A DNA stretch of 63,364 nt, counting the filler, from Guillardia theta CCMP2712 (taxonomy: Eukaryota > Protista > Cryptophyta): NCBI RefSeq assembly GCF_000315625.1. It is 6 parts of 6 records of this genome, joined end to end, with 100 filler letters (N's around TTAATTAATTAA, not from the genome) between each part and the next. Parts side by side here need not be neighbours in the genome. Positions count along the whole stretch, not along the records: positions 38,631 to 50,888 come from NW_005434398.1; 5 more parts are not named here. One strand, 5' to 3'. The notes below the pieces were generated by a model. That model made no database searches, was not told the origin of the DNA, and was given only the letters and a program-made list of their open reading frames with translations. Position 1 is the stretch's first letter. Each line of letters opens with the position of its first letter. A program made the position numbers and the translations under genes. Shown here in pieces: positions 38,587 to 48,330 of the stretch.

Positions 38587-38759
38587 NNNNNNNNNNNNNN
38601 NNNNNNNNNNNNNNNNNNNNNNNNNNNNNNACTCCCAGCGACCTCTACCATATCATCAGGCCTTACTGCAGGAGAGTGGACATGGACCGGCTCCGGCACG
38701 GCCATTTGTCTTACACATAATCTATGAAATACCTACGGAGTGGCTCCTAGACTCCTTCA

Positions 38760-40092
38760 TGGCCGGGGGCCTGATCTCTCCGGGCGGCCGTGACCGGTCA
38801 GCGGACCGTGTCAGCAGGCCCGTGACATGTCAGCCGGCTGACAGGGGCCGTGACCCGGCTGACAGGCTCACCTGACCGGTCACGTGACACATCACGTGAC
38901 CGAGACAAGACTTTTTTATATCGCAGATCCAAAAACCCATAGGACATTTCTCCCAGGGGGAAGAAAACCTCCCTTGACCCCCCTGTTTCTCGACGGATCC
39001 TGCCGGCCGGGCCCGTCAGTAGACCGACTGCAGCCTTCAGCCCCGCCTCAGACCCCCTGGAGGCCCGCCAGGAGGCTAAGTGTCCGGAGATTGGCCGGGG
39101 GCCTGATCTCTCCGGGCGGCCGTGACCGGTCAGCGGACCGTGTCAGCAGGCCCGTGACATGTCAGCCGGCTGACAGGGGCCGTGACCCGGCTGACAGGCT
39201 CACTGACCGGTCACGTGACACATCACGTGACCGAGACAAGACTTTTTTATATCGCAGATCCAAAAACCCATAGGACATTTCTCCCAGGGGGAAGAAAACC
39301 TCCCTTGACCCCCCTGTTTCTCGACGGATCCTGCCGGCCGGGCCCGTCAGTAGACCGACTGCAGCCTTCAGCCCCGCCTCAGACCCCCTGGAGGCCCGCC
39401 AGGAGGCTAAGTGTCCGGAGATTGGCCGGGGGCCTGATCTCTCCGGGCGGCCGTGACCGGTCAGCGGACCGTGTCAGCAGGCCCGTGACATGTCAGCCGG
39501 CTGACAGGGGCCGTGACCCGGCTGACAGGCTCACCTGACCGGTCACGTGACACATCACGTGACCGAGACAAGACTTTTTTATATCGCAGATCCAAAAACC
39601 CATAGGACATTTCTCCCAGGGGGAAGAAAACCTCCCTTGACCCCCCTGTTTCTCGACGGATCCTGCCGGCCGGGCCCGTCAGTAGACCGACTGCAGCCTT
39701 CAGCCCCGCCTCAGACCCCCTGGAGGCCCGCCAGGAGGCGGAGTGTCCGGAGATTGGCCGGGGGCCTGATCTCTCCGGGCGGCCGTGACCGGTCAGCGGA
39801 CCGTGTCAGCAGGCCCGTGACATGTCAGCCGGCTGACAGGGGCCGTGACCCGGCTGACAGGCTCACCTGACCGGTCACGTGACACATCACGTGACCGAGA
39901 CAAGACTTTTTTATATCGCAGATCCAAAAACCCATAGGACATTTCTCCCAGGGGGAAGAAAACCTCCCTTGACCCCCCTGTTTCTCGACGGATCCTGCCG
40001 GCCGGGCCCGTCAGTAGACCGACTGCAGCCTTCAGCCCCGCCTCAGACCCCCTGGAGGCCCGCCAGGAGGCGGAGTGTCCGGAGATTGGCCG
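38760..40092. repeat. Tandem array of a 332-bp unit, left block (4 near-identical copies)
   Basis: GGCCG recurs at 38761, 39093, 39424, 39756 and 40088 (spacing 332/331/332/332). The unit is rich in TGAC/GTCA palindromes and CACGTG boxes. Confidence 0.97.
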
Positions 40093-40119
40093 CATTCCAT
40101 TGGGTTCTCAACTGGATTT
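40093..40119 (+). repeat. Left terminal inverted repeat CATTCCATTGGGTTCTCAACTGGATTT
   Basis: Reverse complement of 50232-50258 (26/27). Confidence 0.95.
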
Positions 40120-41164
40120 TATTCCGTCTCGGCGGGGTCTTTTTCTACCTGGATTTTTCTTAATGAATAGGTTTTGGATTTCAAAGTGAAAATTTTCCTT
40201 GAAATGTTTTACTTCTGTCAAACCACGCCATTTCAAATTGTGGGATCCTGCCAGCACCGTGCCATTTCTGGAATTTTTAAACGTTGTACAGAATGTACCA
40301 ATGTTGTACACTGTGTTAGTTTGGGAGACTCACGTTCAAGCAGATCGCGCCCTGTGGGCACCATGTTGTGAGATACATACATCAATGTGATGACAAGAAC
40401 ATCTTTTGATGCCAAATTTGACCAGATTTGAATGTATCATGTGGGAAAACGACTGCATTTCCTTTAAGCAGAGTGTTTTGAGGATGATGCATATCATGTT
40501 GCAATAAGAATTTTGTGGAAAGGAAATATTTGAATCTCAGTTCGTTGAGTTGCGTGTAAATGCAAATATGCTTTGAAGCATTGTGAGCATAGTTGTAACT
40601 GTGCATTGACTTGTAATAGTGTAAGGTATGCATTCAAATTTGCATGCTCACGCTATCCAATAATTGTGTGACTTTCCTTGTCATACTTGCACTGAAACAC
40701 CTCAATTCTGATGTGCCAAAGCCCTGATCAGCTGTTTTCACACTTTCAGAAGGGAAACATGAAAGGAATCGATCAGAGAGGCAACCTTCGAAGACATAAA
40801 GGAAATGCGATTCTCCTTATTGCGATGACGGCCTAGCTTCCTGTACCAGAATGCTTCGTCGGTTGTATATGAAACATATTTCAAGAGACTTGCTGGTGCT
40901 TTGCCATGATTGCATTTTTTGAGGCTTCTCCCAATGCATTCCACAACAGTTTGAGTCTTGTGAAATGCTCTCAACAGCCAGTGGGATGGCGATTATAACA
41001 TGTCATTGGAGTTTGTGAGGCACTGAGAGGGAGGAGAGAGGAGGGGACAGGGGAGGTGGGAAGGAGATGGGAGAGTAGGGGTTGGAAGGGAAAGAGAAGC
41101 CTGGGAGGTCACTGCGATGATATGCTGATCGCGAGAGACTGGGAGATGCCAGAGGAGAGACGGT

Positions 41165-43153
41165 TTACTCAAGACCACTAGCGAGGAAGGGATGCTTCAG
41201 AGCCTCCTCTGCAGTCATCCTCGTGCGGGGATCGATGTCGAGGCAGCGGTTGAGGAAGTCCCAGATCGCATGTTTCTCCTCCACCTCCAGCCAGCCCTTG
41301 CATCCCGCATCCTCGCTCAGGGCGCTTGATAAGGTCCGCCATGTTTGCTCCAAACCGCGGGCATAGCTCAGATACTGTTCCAATGGTCCGAACTGAATGA
41401 CATGAAGTTAGCATCCCCAGCTTAAGAGTCCCGCCACCATATCACCCTCATCCTCATCCTCATCCTCATCCTCATCCTCATCCTCATCCTCATCCTCATG
41501 ATACAACAACAGCAGCAACAACGACAACAATTTTACTTCAACGTCGAGCTTGAAATCTTCGATGACATCTCTGATCTTATCCCTGTACTGACCCGTATAC
41601 CCATAGTTGTGCTGGAACTCAGCGTCCATGCTCTTGATGTACATGCGCAAGCTGTTCAGACCATACAGTCAGACCAGCGCACTTACTTCAAGGCTTACAC
41701 AACGGGCGTACCCGTAGATCTCCATGACCGCCAAGTTGTCATTGTCATGCCGGAACCACTGGAAGCAGTGTGTCTGCCGGCACAGCAGGGTAAGCAGTAT
41801 CACCCCAGCGCTCCAGACGTCCACTGCTGTCGTCTGGTGGTGGCTGCCCATGAGCACTTCGGGCGCGCGGTACCCCCGGGTTCCCCCGCGGTTGACTGGA
41901 AGCCGTTTCAGTTTGACCCCTGAGTTCCTCACGGTCTCCGATGCGTTCGTCCTTCTGACGCCCAACCTTCGCCTCTTTGCAATCTGCTGCGCCAGGTTCT
42001 CAGAGGGCAAGATGTAGCCGTTGCTCTTCGTGGCAGGGAAATACTTGCTCATTGACCCTGACGTTGTTCTGCGGCCTGGTGAAGGCGTTTGTCCTGTGGA
42101 AATTCCCAGAGCAGTCTTCTGCATTTTCTTCTCTGCCAGCCCAAAGTCCACAAGCAAGTACTTCTTGTTCCTTCTGTCGTAGAGGAAGTTATTCAATTTC
42201 ACGTCTCGATGTATGATCCCGAGGGCATGTACAGACCTCATTGCTACAAACAAATTCTTCATGTAGTGGGTAATCTCTTTGATGGTCAAATCTTTGACGT
42301 AATCTGAGGGACTGTCATGTTCGAAGTATTCAAAAATCAAAGCCTGCTGCTCCTCGACAATGATTATCCCATTGGGCGCCAGTGGCGGACTTTGCACACG
42401 CTGTACAATGTTGGATTTTCCATGCAAGCTTGATATAAAGTTTGCTTCCTTCTTATGCGCATCCATAGTTTGAAATGGTAATAATCGTTTGATTGCTACT
42501 CGGCGATCATTTAACCTGTCGTAGGCCTCATAGACCTCCCCGAAAGTCCCCGAGCCAACCATTCTTGTTAAATCAAACTGCTTTTCTACTTCATTGAGAA
42601 ACCGCATGTCCACTGGGTAGATCATCAGCTCTTCTCGTATTGAAATTTTCTTGTGTGCAGCCTCTTGATACACAATGTTATCAGCACTCCGACTTCTGCG
42701 CTTGCGGTTTCGCAGAGTTTCCATACTTGCCGATCGTTCTTCCTCTGTTTCGCGGGCCCTCTGCCTCCTCTCCGATTGTCTCCTTCGTTGGCTTGCTAAC
42801 TGCGCAGATCGTTCTTCCTCTGTTTCGCGGGCCCTCCTCTCCGATTCTCTCATTCGTTGGCTTGCTAACCGCGCAGATCGTTCTTCCTCTGTTTCGCGGG
42901 CCCTCCTCTCCGATTCTCTCATTCGTTGGCTTGCTAACCGCGCAGATCGTTCTTCCTCTGTTTCGCGGGCCCTCCTCTCCGATTGTCTCCTTCGTTGGCT
43001 TGCTAACCGCGCAGATCGTTCTTCCTCTGTTTCCCGTTCCCTCCTCTCCCGTTTTCTTCTTCGATTGACCTCCAACTGCGCAGATCGTTCTTCGTCTGTT
43101 TTCTGCCAATGCATTGTTTTGTTGGGATAAGCAGAACATACACCCCCTGGCAA
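41165..43153 (-). CDS. CDC7: Cdc7 (DDK catalytic subunit)-like Ser/Thr kinase with N-terminal 23-aa STPR-like repeats; spliced 3' exons
   Basis: GSGTFGEVY, VAIK, HRDVKLNNFL, LVDFGLA, a long insert, then RGGTRGYRAPEVL..HQTTAVDVWSAGVILL (Cdc7-type). Further exons at ~41540-41652 and 41165-~41374 end RCLDIDPRTRMTAEEALKHPF. Confidence 0.85.
42720..43105 (-). repeat. 69-bp coding tandem repeat (~5.5 x ETEEERSARLASQRxRxSERRAR)
   Basis: GATCGTTCTTCCTCTGTTTC recurs mostly at 69-bp spacing. The 23-residue period and ETxExRxxRL consensus fit STPR repeats. Confidence 0.9.
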
Positions 43154-43182
43154 ATTTCAAAGTGCTCCCAAATATTTGGGAT

Positions 43183-44499
43183 ATGTCAAATCAGATCGTT
43201 ACATTTTGTAATCAGACGCAATGGGTTTGGCAAAACAGGCATAAATTATTCACGGCGGTGTTGACGGGCCTTGGCGCTGTTGACGGGCACATGTCGCGCC
43301 AACGATCAGCTGCGTTGAGAGGCATCGAGACCAGAAGAAATGGAGATAGAATGTCCTCCATTGAAAACATTGACTTTCAAGATGTACCACCTTCCATTTT
43401 GCATGAACCCCTGATCTTGGAGATTCAAAGTTCCCTCCTATCTCAACCTCAGAGTTCGATTGAAGCTCGATGGACAAATAGCACCCTGGGCTTACGGGTT
43501 CTTTTAACTCCTGGTTGTGGAATCCGCTATCATGAAGATGATCCTGCAAGAACCACAAGGTACGGTATAATCAAACGTTTGGTTTCCGATTGCAGGGTGG
43601 AGATTTTCATGTTGTATGACAAGAATGTCATACAACAGATTTTCATGTTGTATGACAAGAATGTCATACAACATGTTGTATGACTTTTGGACAAAGTTGA
43701 TGCAAATATTTCAAAGCATGGCTTACAAAACAAGTCCATGAGGCAGATTGTGAGGTCGATGAATGCGAGAACATGCTTCCAATCAGTGTACACGGAAGAA
43801 GTGGACCTGGACCTGATTCAGGATGTGCTAACTATTCAGTATCCATTCCTTCTTGATTCTATGTCGTCTCAAGCACCGCAATCAAGGATTATCGATGTTG
43901 TAGGGTACATTTTCTTCAATGAAGACAACTACAATCGTCGAAAGCCCTATTGTGAGATTTCGTACTTCAAATTGCAAGACCCTGAACAAACAATTAAGAA
44001 GATAGTATCTTCCAGCATCGAAGCTTCAGTGCTCACACCATCCGGTTACCTCAAGACAGTCTCAGACATCGAAGAGATTAAGAACAGCATGCAGCTATGG
44101 CTCACAGCCAGGAGTCGTACATTCAAGAAAGCAGGCACACAAGATCTTGACTTTACTTGCAAGAATATTTCAATGAGGAGTTTGCTTCGTTTAATTCCAC
44201 CTCGTCTTTTCAAACATGTCAAGGCGAAGAGGAACAAATCACAATTCACATGGATATTTGCAGAGAACATCGTTCAAGATAAAGCTTTCAGAGAAGTGTT
44301 AGATATCCCTTTCAAGTCGACACCGAAGCTTCAAGAAAATCTGACACAAATGTTTGTGGGCGGACCGATGTATTTGTCGTACAAACGGGGGAATATGTCC
44401 GTGGGTTTTGAAACAGTCGGTAGCATTGGTGGCATGATGGGCAAGATCCAATGGGTTGATTGGCGAGACAAGAAAAAGAGGCAACAGAGAGTGTTATAA
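43183..44499 (+). pseudogene. Transposon cargo ORF with BAH-like domain, split by an in-frame TGA (43681-43683)
   Basis: ORFs 43114-43683 and 43687-44499 share a frame. LTPGCGIRY...RYGIIKRL...VEIFMLY...TCFQSVYTEEVDLDLIQDVLTI resembles the BAH strand pattern. Start uncertain. Confidence 0.5.
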
Positions 44500-44510
44500 A
44501 TCATGGGCAA

Positions 44511-47192
44511 CTAAGAGTAGTACAAATTTACAATCGTTCCTAATCCTGACGTTAGCAAATTTCTGAATGCAAAAAAATTGCTCATATTCCTAGACATTTG
44601 CTGCAGAGTCGCTGTATCTACATGATCCTCGGTCATGTTTTCATGAGATCGTTTTCTACCTGCTGCTGCATTGCCTTCCATCAATCCTTTTCTCCAAGCA
44701 GGTCGTCCGCAAATTCTGTGCCTTAGTTCCAAACTTGACATGCTCAGAGCACCCAAAGTAACGTTTCGTTCTGAAAGATGATAGTGGAATAATTCTGCGA
44801 CATGTCCGGCAGATAAAAAGTGAAAATACACAGCACTGAAGAGTTCCTTATCGCCGCATTCTACGACGTATCTGATAACGAATGAATTGATCCTCGTCGC
44901 TAATGTACCAATGTCTTCATCGGTAAGATGGGAAACATGCGTACATGACAATGTCGAAAGTACGGATGACAACTCTTTGTAGATCTCAGTGTATCTATTT
45001 CGCTCATCAACATCATCATAAAGGAGGTCGAGTAGGGGTCCCATAGCTCGGTTCAACAAATCGTCGCACTGTTTGCCTGTCAAGTTAGGAAGCTTCCCAT
45101 TGCTTTCTTCCAACTTATACTTGATTCCAGACTTGTGTAAAATGCTTTGAGCTTGTTTAGTTCGGTGCTTTCGTTGAGCTGTTTTGTATACACACTTGAG
45201 GACACAGTATACAATCCGCAATTTGAGATGGAGAACACAAATGACAAGGCTTTTGCAATCAAGTCCATGTTCTTTCAAAACCTCATGTTCTCTTTCCATT
45301 CCGTGATCCTGCTTCAGTACGACCACCTTCTGCCCACGTTTCAGTGTCTTGCTCCTTTTTGACACATTCAGCTTAGACACGTCTGCCTTGCTCAAACATT
45401 TTCCACCGAACATGCATTGATGTACGATACTGCATTGCCCTCCATTGGTTAGCACTTCGTGAACCAACCAGAACACATCTGCTGGAATCGCTCTTTCCTT
45501 GCAGAAATCATCGACAGTGATGTCCTCAGGAACCTCCGCGATATCGAAGATGAGATGACGCTCAGCTGATTTTACATGGCAGTACAAGCAGCATTGATCT
45601 CCCTTGGCACCTATGCGAAAATGACGTTTAGAAAGGACACTGAGGCAACCATGCTATCAGCAATTACCTTTCATGCCGACAAGATGCCACAAGCCCTTGA
45701 GGTCGCCACGAAATTCAATTGAGAGGGGAATGATGAGCTCAGGATGAGCAGCAGGGTCACTCATGGACCGTTTGCGACCATCGATGCACGTCAAATTTCC
45801 ATTGTCGTCCCTGTAAAAATGCAGCCCAGCAGCTATCTTCCTTCCATCCGCACAGATCAGTTCGCCTAAGAATGCCTTCAAGTCAAGTCCATATTCATCC
45901 CAAAGATTTGCCTTGATATTTTCAATTGAATCTTGCAAATAGATCAGTAAAAATGTGACATACGATGCAGGAGAATTTAATCTTGTTTCTTGATCGAAAA
46001 AACAGTCTGCAAACTGCACGGCATCATCCCAGACTCCAATCAAATTCATTGCAAAGTCTGTATGCTCTGTTCCTGACTGAGCTGAACAGCCTAGTCGGAC
46101 GCTATCGAAGCAGGTGGACAACTTCAATCCTTTGACCGACATCAATTCTGGTGTCGACTGCACAAGCTTCATGAAAAACAGTTCCGTCACTTTGATAAGA
46201 TTTGCTCCATGGCCCCCAGGAAGCTCGACTATTCCATCAACCTTTTCTTCTACTAATCTTTTTTGCTTGGCCTTCGTCCTGCTGATTTCCGTAGGACTGT
46301 GCATAACTTGAAGCCCACTTTCCTTCATCATTTTGTGAAGATCGTCCAACGCCTTGTGAGTCAGTCCATTTTGCAAAGTCATAAGAGAAAGCTCGTCTAT
46401 TCTCGCACAAACAGAGTTGTACATTTTTTGCAACGCTTTCTTTATCCTCTTGTTGGTCTTGGCATGCTTTTTCAAATGAAAAGATGCAGATTGTGCAAAA
46501 CCATTCATAAACGACTCCAGGTGAAACAGTGAATCGGAACTTTGACGTAGATCACTGAGATGGCCGAAAGCTTTGCCACTTCCATTCAAGCCTGTCATGC
46601 GTTGCAGACCTCCAGAGAGCAAATTGGAGGTGGGAGTTATTTCAGCAAGAATGTCCTTGAGAATTCTTAGCTTTTTGTCTGCAGAATCATTGGAAATGTC
46701 TTCCAGATTTGCCGGGCATATCTCCTGAGGGAAATTTGCTTTCCAAATGTCCTCAAATGTCAAATTTAGAACCTTGTCAATGTTGGGAATTGCATCTTTC
46801 ATGCGCTGATGCTCACTTTTGAGTTTTTCATATTCTGCACTCAAGTGTGCCAACCGACTCGCGCAATTGAAGTAGCCTTGCAGAGTACTTCCAACAACAG
46901 ACGATGGCGAAAAAAGATATCCGTTTGCAACGTAGTACAAGAAAGAAGCAACATCAGGCTTATCAGAAGTTTTCTCCATGAAGCCTTCCAGCAATGCAAA
47001 ATGTTCAAGTCCCCTCCAGGTAGCTTCATCGTAGTTGACACGACGATAAGGTGTTGGATTCAAGCCTTGTAGGAATGCCATCGTGTAGCTGTCCATACTT
47101 CGAACAGGATAAGCTTGAACAATTCGCTGCATGTCGTAGCCATCCAAAGGGCGGCGGTAACAACATGGATGAAAAGGATTGAAATCTTCCAC
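44511..47192 (-). CDS. RAG1/Transib-like DDE transposase (>=874 aa; 57-bp intron at 45667..45611; 5' end runs toward the N gap)
   Basis: Splicing GTAATT...GCATAG joins FRGDLKGLWHLVGMK-GAKGDQCCLYC. Motifs in RAG1 order: STCFDS (D, 46104-6), RGDLK (D, 45702-4), CxxC, ICVLHLKLRI, YFHFLSAGHV, LGALSMSSLE (E, 44727-9). Confidence 0.88.
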
Positions 47193-47937
47193 ACGACATC
47201 CGCACTGCTACACATATAGAGAATACCAGAAAANNNNNNNNNNNNNNNNNNNNNNNNNNNNNNNNNNNNNNNNNNNNNNNNNNNNNNNNNNNNNNNNNNN
47301 NNNNNNNNNNNNNNNNNNNNNNNNNNNNNNNNNCCGGGAAAACTACTATTTGTTGCTAATGATTCCGCAATTTGATTGAACATTTCAGCTTAGTCTCGAC
47401 TTCACAGTTCGAGTATGAAATTTTAGAACAAATGTTGAGCCCTTGACATGGAATATTTCCACACATGGTAGAGAATAATTGCACAGGTTGTAATATAGTA
47501 GGGATATAACCCCCACCCCTGAACACCGTGGAAAACTACCCCTACCTACACTTTATACCGATTTATCATGATATTTGGTAGGGTAGGCCAGAGTGAATGG
47601 GTAGGTACTACGTTTTGTGTTTGAGGTTTGATCAGAAAAGGGGCTGTGTTCCCACTACCTACCCCCTTCTCATATGATAATAAGCGCACCCCACGTTCAA
47701 CTTATGTTTTTGGGGGTGTTGCTGGATGGTCGTAGGGTTTCACTGACTCTGCAGGGGTAGTGAGCAAAACAAAAAACTGTGTTTTGCTCACGCAGACAAA
47801 CACACATACAGAAGAGACAAACAAACAAACGAACAGCGACAGACAAACACACATACACAGAACAGACAGACAAACAGACATACAGAAGAGACAAACAAAC
47901 AAACGAACAGTTCAGGCAAATAAACAAACATACCCTT

Positions 47938-48330
47938 CAAATTTGAAATTATGCCCAAATATTTCGGATATGTCAAATCAGATCCTTACATTTTGTAATC
48001 AGACGCAATGGGTCGGGCACGCATGTCGCGCCAACGATGATGTTTTCCTGGGGTTGCAATACGCATAAGCTCACGATCAGCTGCGTTGAGAGGCATCGAG
48101 ACCAGAAGAAATGGAGATAGAATGTCCTCCATTGAAAACATTGACTTTCAAGATGTACCACCTTCCATTTTGCATGAACCCCTGATCTTGGAGATTCAAA
48201 GTTCCCTCCTATCTCAACCTCAGAGTTCGATTGAAGCTCGATGGACAAATAGCACCCTGGGCTTACGGGTTCTTTTAACTCCTGGTTGTGGAATCCGCTA
48301 TCATGAAGATGATCCTGCAAGAACCACAAG
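47938..48330. repeat. Internal direct duplication of 43151-43560 within the transposon
   Basis: 48073-48330 is essentially identical to 43302-43560, and 47938-48013 is a diverged copy of 43151-43226. Confidence 0.9.

Follow-up and report, generated by a model that had tools for sequence, protein, structure and literature searches.

An expressed STPR-repeat, Cdc7-like kinase gene as probable passenger of a satellite-borne transposon in Guillardia theta

A 63,364-nucleotide stretch of joined genome parts from the cryptophyte Guillardia theta CCMP2712 (the window) contains an expressed three-exon gene in which an array of 23-residue repeats of the STPR type is fused to a Cdc7-like protein kinase. 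This gene is probably a passenger in a 10.2-kb DNA transposon that also carries a transposase with a predicted RAG1 fold and a second gene, ORF2. Window positions 38631–50888, which hold all of these features, match the end of scaffold JH993240.1 (labelled L007) at 100% identity. A first-pass annotation, made from the sequence alone, had proposed the repeat–kinase fusion as transposon cargo, and we followed it up with database, structure, transcript and copy comparisons.

A repeat array and a kinase in one gene

The gene encodes 581 amino acids on the minus strand, with introns at 41711–41652 and 41536–41393. The first-pass annotation had placed it at 41165–43153, and these coordinates are right; the model is now refined to three exons with the first ATG at 43114, the open reading frame (ORF) listed from 43153 starting at TTG. 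In L005, a transcript contig of 1458 nt from a JGI sample (99% identical), both introns are precisely removed; this contig starts within the repeat array and continues in frame (ASQRRRQSERRQRARETEEERSAS...). Further evidence comes from Logan contigs of three runs, each from a different study (X1, X2 and X3), whose RNA type is the tool's guess; the spliced joints show that these runs are RNA. The joint 41651/41712 is found in all three, with GT..AG ends on the minus strand, and the joint 41392/41537 in one (X2). RNA contigs reach into or across the array (42129–42793, 42902–43000 and 43046–43499) and, together with L005, place the repeats in the transcript and in frame, as had been supposed. 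The raw RNA run X16 gave 33 reads only, with mismatches, too few for strand or 5'-end calls. The public models of the kinase, GUITHDRAFT_83083 and 83393 (312 amino acids), start at an internal methionine and read through intron 1, missing the repeats and two exons. Intron 2 holds a (GAGGAT)n microsatellite of 9.7 units (41442–41499), and the transcript-derived protein P0137 retains this intron, with a change of frame.

Tandem Repeats Finder (TRF) reports a 69-bp unit in 5.3 copies (91% matches, score 551), and the Pfam Pkinase match (E 1.2e-34) lies in the same open frame, as the first-pass annotation had read it. Minus-strand translation gives four near-identical 23-residue units, ETEEERSARLASQR[R/M]R[Q/E]SERRAR, and one 25-residue unit, with degenerate units on both sides. 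STPR repeats are defined by a strict length of 23 residues, Glu1, Thr or Ser at position 2 and Arg9 (PMC4856987). Every full unit here reads E-T-E-E-E-R-S-A-R, which keeps Glu1, Thr2 and Arg9. In the Protein Data Bank (PDB) the repeats match one structure significantly, the FMBP-1 STPR domain (5d23, E 5.5e-5), in register over four units, and of the FMBP-1 DNA contacts Arg6, Arg9, Leu10 and Arg20 are kept. On this evidence the repeats are of the STPR type, in agreement with the earlier assignment. STPR domains are known fused to various domains and also from Helitrons (PMC4856987, PMC11417382), so that the earlier remark on Helitron-borne repeats is documented, while outside animals the STPR structure paper lists a single plant case (PMC4856987). 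In the literature searched we found no case of an STPR array fused to a Cdc7-like kinase.

The kinase displays GSGTFG, VAIK, HRD, DFG and G-T-R-G-Y-RAPE, and thus all the motifs named in the first-pass annotation (VAIK, HRD, DFG, APE, the Cdc7-type insert and G-T-x-G-x-RAPE). Human CDC7 (E 1e-32) and yeast Cdc7 (7e-31) are its best PDB relatives, with CK2 eleven orders behind (1.5e-21), which bears out the proposed Cdc7 likeness. Among the best 120 database matches, all named ones beyond a handful of cryptophyte copies are CDC7, at 28–39% identity. From DFG to APE the kinase measures 97 residues, about 70 above the usual; this is the position of kinase insert 2 (KI-2), the insert between DFG and APE (PMC7416108), and phmmer aligns CDC7 in two stretches that flank it. 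About 75 residues separate '...LAVMEIYG' from 'AIWDFLNRCL' in exons 2–3, at the putative position of kinase insert 3 (KI-3, between helices G and H); as read from the sequence, this exceeds ordinary kinases and falls far short of human KI-3. In human CDC7, R373 and R380 read the acidic or phosphorylated residue at P+1 (PMC7416108). Equivalents of both are kept in NRGGTRGYRAPE, where human 'vapRAGTPGFRAPE' stands against 'pvnRGGTRGYRAPE' in the window.

The element, its copies and its other genes

The gene lies within an element of 10,166 bp (40093–50258) that carries 27-bp terminal inverted repeats (TIRs) at both ends, 93% complementary to each other, with the consensus CATTCCATTGGGTTCTC[A/G]ACTGGATTT (Table 1). 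The flanks consist of a 332-bp satellite of which exactly one monomer is split: the junctions read ...GATTGGCCG / element / GGGGCCTGATC..., and the start-to-start spacing of the satellite across the insert is 10498, or 332 + 10166. Uninterrupted monomers on three scaffolds contain GGCC-GGGGG-CC (14 of 14), and GGCCG/element/GGGGCC restores this five-G monomer with a target-site duplication (TSD) of 0 bp. Intact monomers with five G's and exact junctions therefore indicate an exact insertion without TSD. The first-pass annotation had suggested that the kinase might account for the amplification of the flanking repeats. The data do not support this idea: the satellite keeps its phase across the insertion, and every intact monomer reads GGCC-GGGGG-CC; the 332-bp satellite is the pre-existing insertion target and not a product of the kinase. 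Each monomer contains an internal inverted repeat of 30 nt, whose arms are 83% complementary and separated by 36 nt (e.g. 38789–38884), and a 21-bp direct repeat in two copies.

Two further copies of the element are present in the same assembly, L006 (JH993271.1) and L008 (JH993353.1), 98.4–99.7% identical to the window copy. They occupy the same monomer position in opposite orientation relative to the satellite, L006 without one G. Use of the same site in opposite orientation argues for independent site-specific insertions and not for a duplicated block. The STPR array counts 5.3 units in the window copy and 4.3 in L006 and L008, so that unit number changes by whole units and the frame is kept. 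In L006 a 226-bp inverted piece of satellite adjoins the A end of the element, joined at a TCAG microhomology.

A divergent relative is found in ordinary, non-satellite DNA on JH993064.1 (L003:8655–13757), with TIRs 5.1 kb apart. These TIRs measure 29 bp and are related to those of the window, CATTCCGTTCCAAGTCCCTTCTGGAATTT (CATTCCGTTCC...CTGGAATTT); like the TIRs of the window copy, L006 and L008, they start with CATTCC. They enclose only a transposase (52–64% amino acid identity) and ORF2 (47–62%), and no kinase. The kinase was thus added to a core of two genes, and with a TIR-bounded multi-copy element on the one hand and a minimal relative without kinase on the other, 'cargo', as first proposed, is a fair description. 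As part of this overall reading, the element is probably a cut-and-paste DNA transposon that inserts at GGCCG^GGGGCC of the satellite monomer in either orientation. The motif TTGGCCGGGC adjoins the left end of the L003 relative, recurs 30 bp past its right end and resembles the satellite target TTGGCCGGGGGCC; judged from the sequence, target recognition may be shared between the two elements.

Four near-identical TKL-type kinase genes (GTYRYMAPE) surround the minimal element at L003:573–8239 and 16946–18284, in direct and inverted duplications that include a 1334-nt inverted repeat of 97% identity; these are host genes. We considered them as an alternative cargo and rejected them, as they are about 22% identical and lie outside the TIRs, in the 1.3-kb inverted duplication.

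The transposase is encoded by two ORFs separated by a 57-nt intron, whose removal is seen in each of the three RNA runs; its annotated product (P0123/P0133, 816 amino acids) is an unnamed 'hypothetical protein', as is that of ORF2. A search of 1.84 billion proteins yields 12 representatives of the family, which belong to G. theta, Hanusia phi and metagenomes. An AlphaFold2 model built from the 12-sequence alignment reached a mean predicted local distance difference test score (pLDDT) of 66, with 70–93 in the core. The top 49 PDB matches of this model in Foldseek are all RAG1, amphioxus RAG1-like protein (BbRAGL) or Helicoverpa Transib (HzTransib), with a best E of 1.7e-8. VIA-align superimposed 411 residues on mouse RAG1 459–972 with Z 16.4 and a root mean square deviation of 4.7; the scores were 16.1 for HzTransib and 15.3 for BbRAGL, compared with 10.3 for the P element transposase and 6.1 for Hermes. 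The modelled core thus appears to be a very divergent RAG1/Transib fold. The motifs conserved in the family (FDxxRLG; RGDLKG...CCxxC; CxLHL; YFHxxxxGHV; LSMSxxExRH) lie putatively where RAG1 has its DDE and zinc (ZnC2/ZnH2) ligands. The public model P0123 removes a C-terminal intron (GNAAAG/LGTIVNLYYS; 44511–44620) that the RNA contigs do not show. As these contigs cover 43684 to 45608 without a break, the protein probably ends where the full ORF does.

ORF2 is a continuous frame of 424 codons in L006. The stop in the window copy falls inside a 57-bp insertion (43627–43683) that is absent from L006, L008 and the RNA contigs, and for ORF2 the window copy probably depends on other copies. The insertion is part of a tandem duplication of 36 bp x 2 (43601–43673). 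ORF2 has no Pfam or ESM Atlas match and no detectable relatives of known function, and its AlphaFold2 model, in which many helices are predicted, is unusable at pLDDT 37.6. The kinase gene sits between ORF2 and the A end of the element, and is divergent from ORF2 across the 176-bp spacer. With the duplication of this spacer upstream of the transposase, kinase and transposase may stand under copies of one promoter. We rejected an LTR-like (long terminal repeat) or nested insertion as the source of the direct repeat of about 410 bp, which consists of the duplicated kinase/ORF2 spacer and the 5' part of ORF2.

Transposase, ORF2 and kinase are all represented in RNA contigs. Single contigs of 3.5–3.8 kb (43489–47099) extend over the spliced transposase and, on the opposite strand, the whole of ORF2. 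This points either to convergent transcripts with overlapping 3' ends or to a transposase mRNA whose 3' untranslated region, about 1 kb long, is antisense to ORF2. Contigs of X1, X2 and X3 diverge from the window at 43539 into CACGATGATCTATGCCAGG..., which has no match within the window; this continuation probably stems from a further copy, located elsewhere in the genome, of the duplicated 5' segment of ORF2.

Table 1. Features of the element and its satellite flanks, in window coordinates.
Feature	Coordinates	Strand	Evidence
Satellite left flank, 332-bp, 4 monomers, stops ...GATTGGCCG at the insertion point	38760..40092		TRF period 332, 4.0 copies, 99% matches; junction read
TIR, A end, CATTCCATTGGGTTCTCAACTGGATTT	40093..40119	+	Inverted repeat; same end in L006 and L008
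Kinase exon 3: end of C-lobe, stop TAA 41167-41165	41165..41392	-	L005 and one X2 RNA contig join 41392 to 41537; Pkinase C-terminal match
Kinase exon 2	41537..41651	-	L005 alignment; joint 41651/41712 in X1, X2 and X3
Kinase exon 1: ATG, STPR array, linker, N-lobe, catalytic loop, ~70-residue insert, activation segment	41712..43114	-	ORF; Pfam Pkinase; PDB CDC7 match; intact in three copies
STPR-type array, 69 bp x 5.3, 23-residue units; one unit fewer in L006 and L008	42732..43101	-	TRF; FMBP-1 STPR 5d23 match; copy comparison
Divergent 176-bp spacer, kinase ATG to ORF2 ATG; putative bidirectional promoter	43115..43290		Gene orientations; duplicated at 47938-48331
ORF2, tail-to-tail with transposase; in-frame stop 43681-43683 in this copy	43291..44499	+	424-codon ORF in L006; homologue in L003 minimal element
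Transposase exon 2 (CxLHLKxRI, YFHFLSAGHV, LSMSSLELRH motifs)	44511..45610	-	Gene model P0123/P0133; intron spliced in X1-X3; RAG1 fold match
Transposase exon 1 (FDSVRLG, RGDLKG motifs; assembly gap of N 47234-47333)	45668..47383	-	ORFs; N-terminus read from L006 3109-4761; fold match
(ACAA/ACAG/ATAC)n tract, the element's only 4-bp-periodic stretch	47796..47933		TRF period 4 x 26.8, period 25 x 5.6
Partial duplicate (~88% identity) of 43151-43560: spacer and first ~90 ORF2 codons, upstream of transposase	47938..48331	+	Direct repeats; blast
TIR, B end, CATTCCATTGGGTTCTCGACTGGATTT on minus strand	50232..50258	-	Inverted repeat; junction read; copy comparison
Satellite right flank, 332-bp, resumes GGGGCCTGATC, phase and orientation unchanged	50259..50888		Spacing; junction read

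What the kinase may contribute

Kinases of the Cdc7 family, the catalytic subunits of the Dbf4-dependent kinase (DDK), are activated by Dbf4/Drf1 and phosphorylate MCM2–7. If the passenger serves the element, a possible course of events is that the transposase moves the element by cut-and-paste into the satellite at GGCCG^GGGGCC and that the STPR array lays the kinase along the DNA in the major groove, at about 4 bp per unit. With the catalytic motifs and the two P+1 arginines kept, we propose that the kinase would phosphorylate Cdc7-type sites on chromatin-bound proteins near this tether, candidate substrates being the tails of MCM proteins or, within the element, transposase and ORF2. The DNA tether would then substitute for part of the Dbf4-mediated recruitment, and transposition would be linked to replication. 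We regard a kinase function that ties transposition to DNA replication in this way as doubtful. A more far-reaching version is unlikely: here a DNA-tethered, Dbf4-independent DDK-type kinase would bind the element or the satellite and fire or exploit local replication, or license the transposase in S phase, and transposase and ORF2 would be the cryptophyte counterpart of RAG1L/RAG2L, site-specific and without TSD.

Were the array to bind DNA, the fusion would represent a natural DNA-tethered replication-type kinase, on which one could learn how far recruitment alone can replace Dbf4. The element itself adds to the RAG1/Transib superfamily a lineage invisible to sequence searches, cryptophyte, satellite-specific, without TSD and with a partner gene in the position of RAG2, and these features bear on the diversification of RAG-type recombinases before animals. 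A true RAG1L/RAG2L counterpart would moreover imply a new reaction geometry for this superfamily.

Several results weigh against an STPR–Cdc7-like kinase carried by an element with a RAG1-fold transposase. The repeats are of low complexity and rich in E and R, with a phmmer bias of 18.9 bits, and the FMBP-1 DNA-contact positions Met13, Ser14, Tyr16, Ala17 and Leu21 are Q, R, R, Q and R here. The profile check for STPR suggested in the first-pass annotation returned no Pfam STPR model, neither for the whole protein at E up to 10 (kinase families only) nor, with E up to 1, for the repeats taken by themselves. In metazoan CDC7 a four-cysteine zinc finger at the end of KI-2 docks motif M of DBF4; it is invariant in metazoa and absent in budding yeast (PMC7416108). 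The insert of our kinase (EKKMQK...LPVNRGG) has no cysteine, so the metazoan zinc finger is absent. An IQ-TREE maximum-likelihood tree of 47 rows, 43 of them CDC7s, does not nest the kinase among the sampled canonical CDC7s: a clade of sequences from G. theta, Hanusia phi and metagenomes (99 in the SH-aLRT branch test) is set apart by a long stem of 1.95, sister to 43 of the 43 sampled CDC7s (85), although long-branch attraction to the outgroup is possible. Since it is sister to the CDC7s and not nested in them, we call the kinase Cdc7-like and not a CDC7 orthologue; it is not a recent copy of a canonical CDC7. For the transposase there is no sequence-level link to RAG1, the match being one of predicted fold at a mean pLDDT of 66. 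None of the 12 family members has a Pfam match, a search of the family alignment profile against PDB sequences returned no RAG1, and the ESM Atlas returned nothing of use for the 511-aa ORF and a weak language-model hint of RAG1 only for the 358-aa ORF. The element also lacks the 5-bp TSD and the CAC-type ends of Transib/RAGL elements. Finally, dN/dS (the ratio of non-synonymous to synonymous substitution rates) of the kinase is 0.50 against the more distant paralogue L002, a metagenome sequence, the repeat region holds nine non-synonymous differences and one synonymous, and the element copies are so young (<=1.6% divergence) that intact frames are expected even without selection.

These last points feed the strongest rival. 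Pack-MULEs, CACTA elements and Helitrons capture host genes, and it is possible that a host STPR-kinase gene was captured as DNA, with its introns and 3' flank, and is transcribed from the adjoining element promoter while contributing nothing. Such a history accords with a solo STPR-kinase paralogue (L001, GUITHDRAFT_116856) that lies in an ordinary chromosomal context without TIRs or transposase and is 88% identical to the element gene over parts of the exons and of an intron as well as 420 bp of 3' flank. In CCMP2712 this paralogue suffers from a 675-bp internal deletion, lacking in its metagenome counterpart L002 (96–98% identical), which indicates that the gene family can decay. Its N-terminus retains two degenerate STPR units, so repeats and kinase were already fused before the element-borne copy arose; in that copy the array appears, from its sequence, to have been recently amplified. 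A gene that contributes nothing is harder to reconcile with the state of the element-borne copies. Their kinase reading frames are intact in three of three, the catalytic motifs and both P+1 arginines are all kept, both introns are correctly spliced in material from three studies, and the array stays in frame as its unit number changes. Duplication of the kinase-side spacer upstream of the transposase further suggests integration into the regulation of the element. The first-pass annotation had looked to dN/dS among the copies for selection: by the Nei-Gojobori method the kinase part gives 0.17–0.21, from only five synonymous and three non-synonymous changes, a low value that is not matched against L002. 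Compared with L002, 10% of sites differ in exon 2 and 7% in exon 3, against 19% in intron 2, which also has many gaps. Together these figures provide weak evidence, not proof, of selective constraint on the kinase.

A quite improbable alternative is that the kinase acts as a regulator of the element's own proteins, phosphorylating the transposase or ORF2, with the STPR array bringing it to transposon or satellite DNA. RAG2 is controlled by cell-cycle phosphorylation, and the kinase gene stands beside ORF2, divergently transcribed, with the promoter-like spacer duplicated next to the transposase and all three genes in RNA contigs. FMBP-1 STPR reads 4 bp per repeat (PMC4856987), and the 4-bp-periodic tract 47796–47933 could, speculatively, be a candidate binding site of the array. 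The substrate, however, is purely hypothetical, and the minimal relative transposed without a kinase, so that the basic reaction can proceed in its absence. Hardly credible is a host gene that is not cargo at all, the cell's own CDC7 or an essential paralogue lying between repeats in a segmentally duplicated satellite block: all copies do share one type of satellite, a class of DNA able to spread by recombination, and no other G. theta CDC7-type protein is among the best 120 database matches, but against this stand 27-bp TIRs exactly at a monomer break with the satellite phase restored, use of the same site in opposite orientation, a related TIR pair around a kinase-free relative in non-satellite DNA, the RAG1-fold transposase inside the element and a tree in which the kinase branches off outside canonical CDC7. 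Among the best 120 database matches, whose anonymous top entries could not be assigned to G. theta, and with no similarity search of the G. theta genome itself, we did not find a canonical CDC7 of the host; the literature naming both Guillardia and Cdc7 lists none for G. theta.

Relation to known systems

The array shares with the STPR of Bombyx FMBP-1 (PDB 5D23), and with ZNF821 and Helitron-borne STPRs, the 23-residue unit; Glu1, Thr2, Arg6, Arg9, Leu10 and Arg20 are kept. It differs in being far more arginine-rich, in the replaced contact positions 13, 14, 16, 17 and 21, in its fusion to a kinase, in its occurrence outside animals, in the missing Pfam STPR match, and in units that are near-identical in DNA, as expected of a recent amplification, and vary in number between element copies.

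Cdc7/Hsk1 provides the best sequence match of the kinase in the PDB and in the protein database. Both have the long DFG–APE insert (KI-2), a putative extra stretch between helices G and H (KI-3 position) that is shorter here, G-T-x-G-x-R-A-P-E and both P+1 arginines (PMC7416108). In contrast, the kinase described here is 30–38% identical to any canonical CDC7, reads HRDVKLNN in place of HRDVKPSN, lacks cysteines in the insert and branches as the long-stemmed sister of the CDC7 clade. It also bears an N-terminal STPR array and is transposon-encoded in several copies.

Likeness to Transib and RAGL (ProtoRAG) elements lies in the predicted transposase core, which matches RAG1 459–972, HzTransib and BbRAGL at Z 15–16, in the TIR-bounded cut-and-paste anatomy, and in a second gene tail-to-tail with the transposase, as RAG2L is with RAG1L. 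Occurrence in a unicellular alga is shared as well: the RAGL element of Aureococcus anophagefferens has a 5-bp TSD and CAC-type TIRs (PMC9435367). Here the ends are CATTCC and not CAC, the TSD is 0 bp and not 5 bp, and the element is specific to a satellite site, carries a kinase gene and has no sequence or Pfam similarity to RAG1; ORF2 is without demonstrable likeness to RAG2, a kelch propeller, its low-confidence model being helical. Our literature search returned no paper that pairs Guillardia with RAG1 or Transib.

Finally, the element resembles gene-capturing transposons such as Pack-MULEs, CACTA elements and Helitrons in holding a host-type, intron-bearing gene between its ends, of which a solo paralogue exists elsewhere. 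Unlike in those, the whole gene is intact and expressed here, the element retains its own transposase, and the promoter-like spacer has been duplicated.

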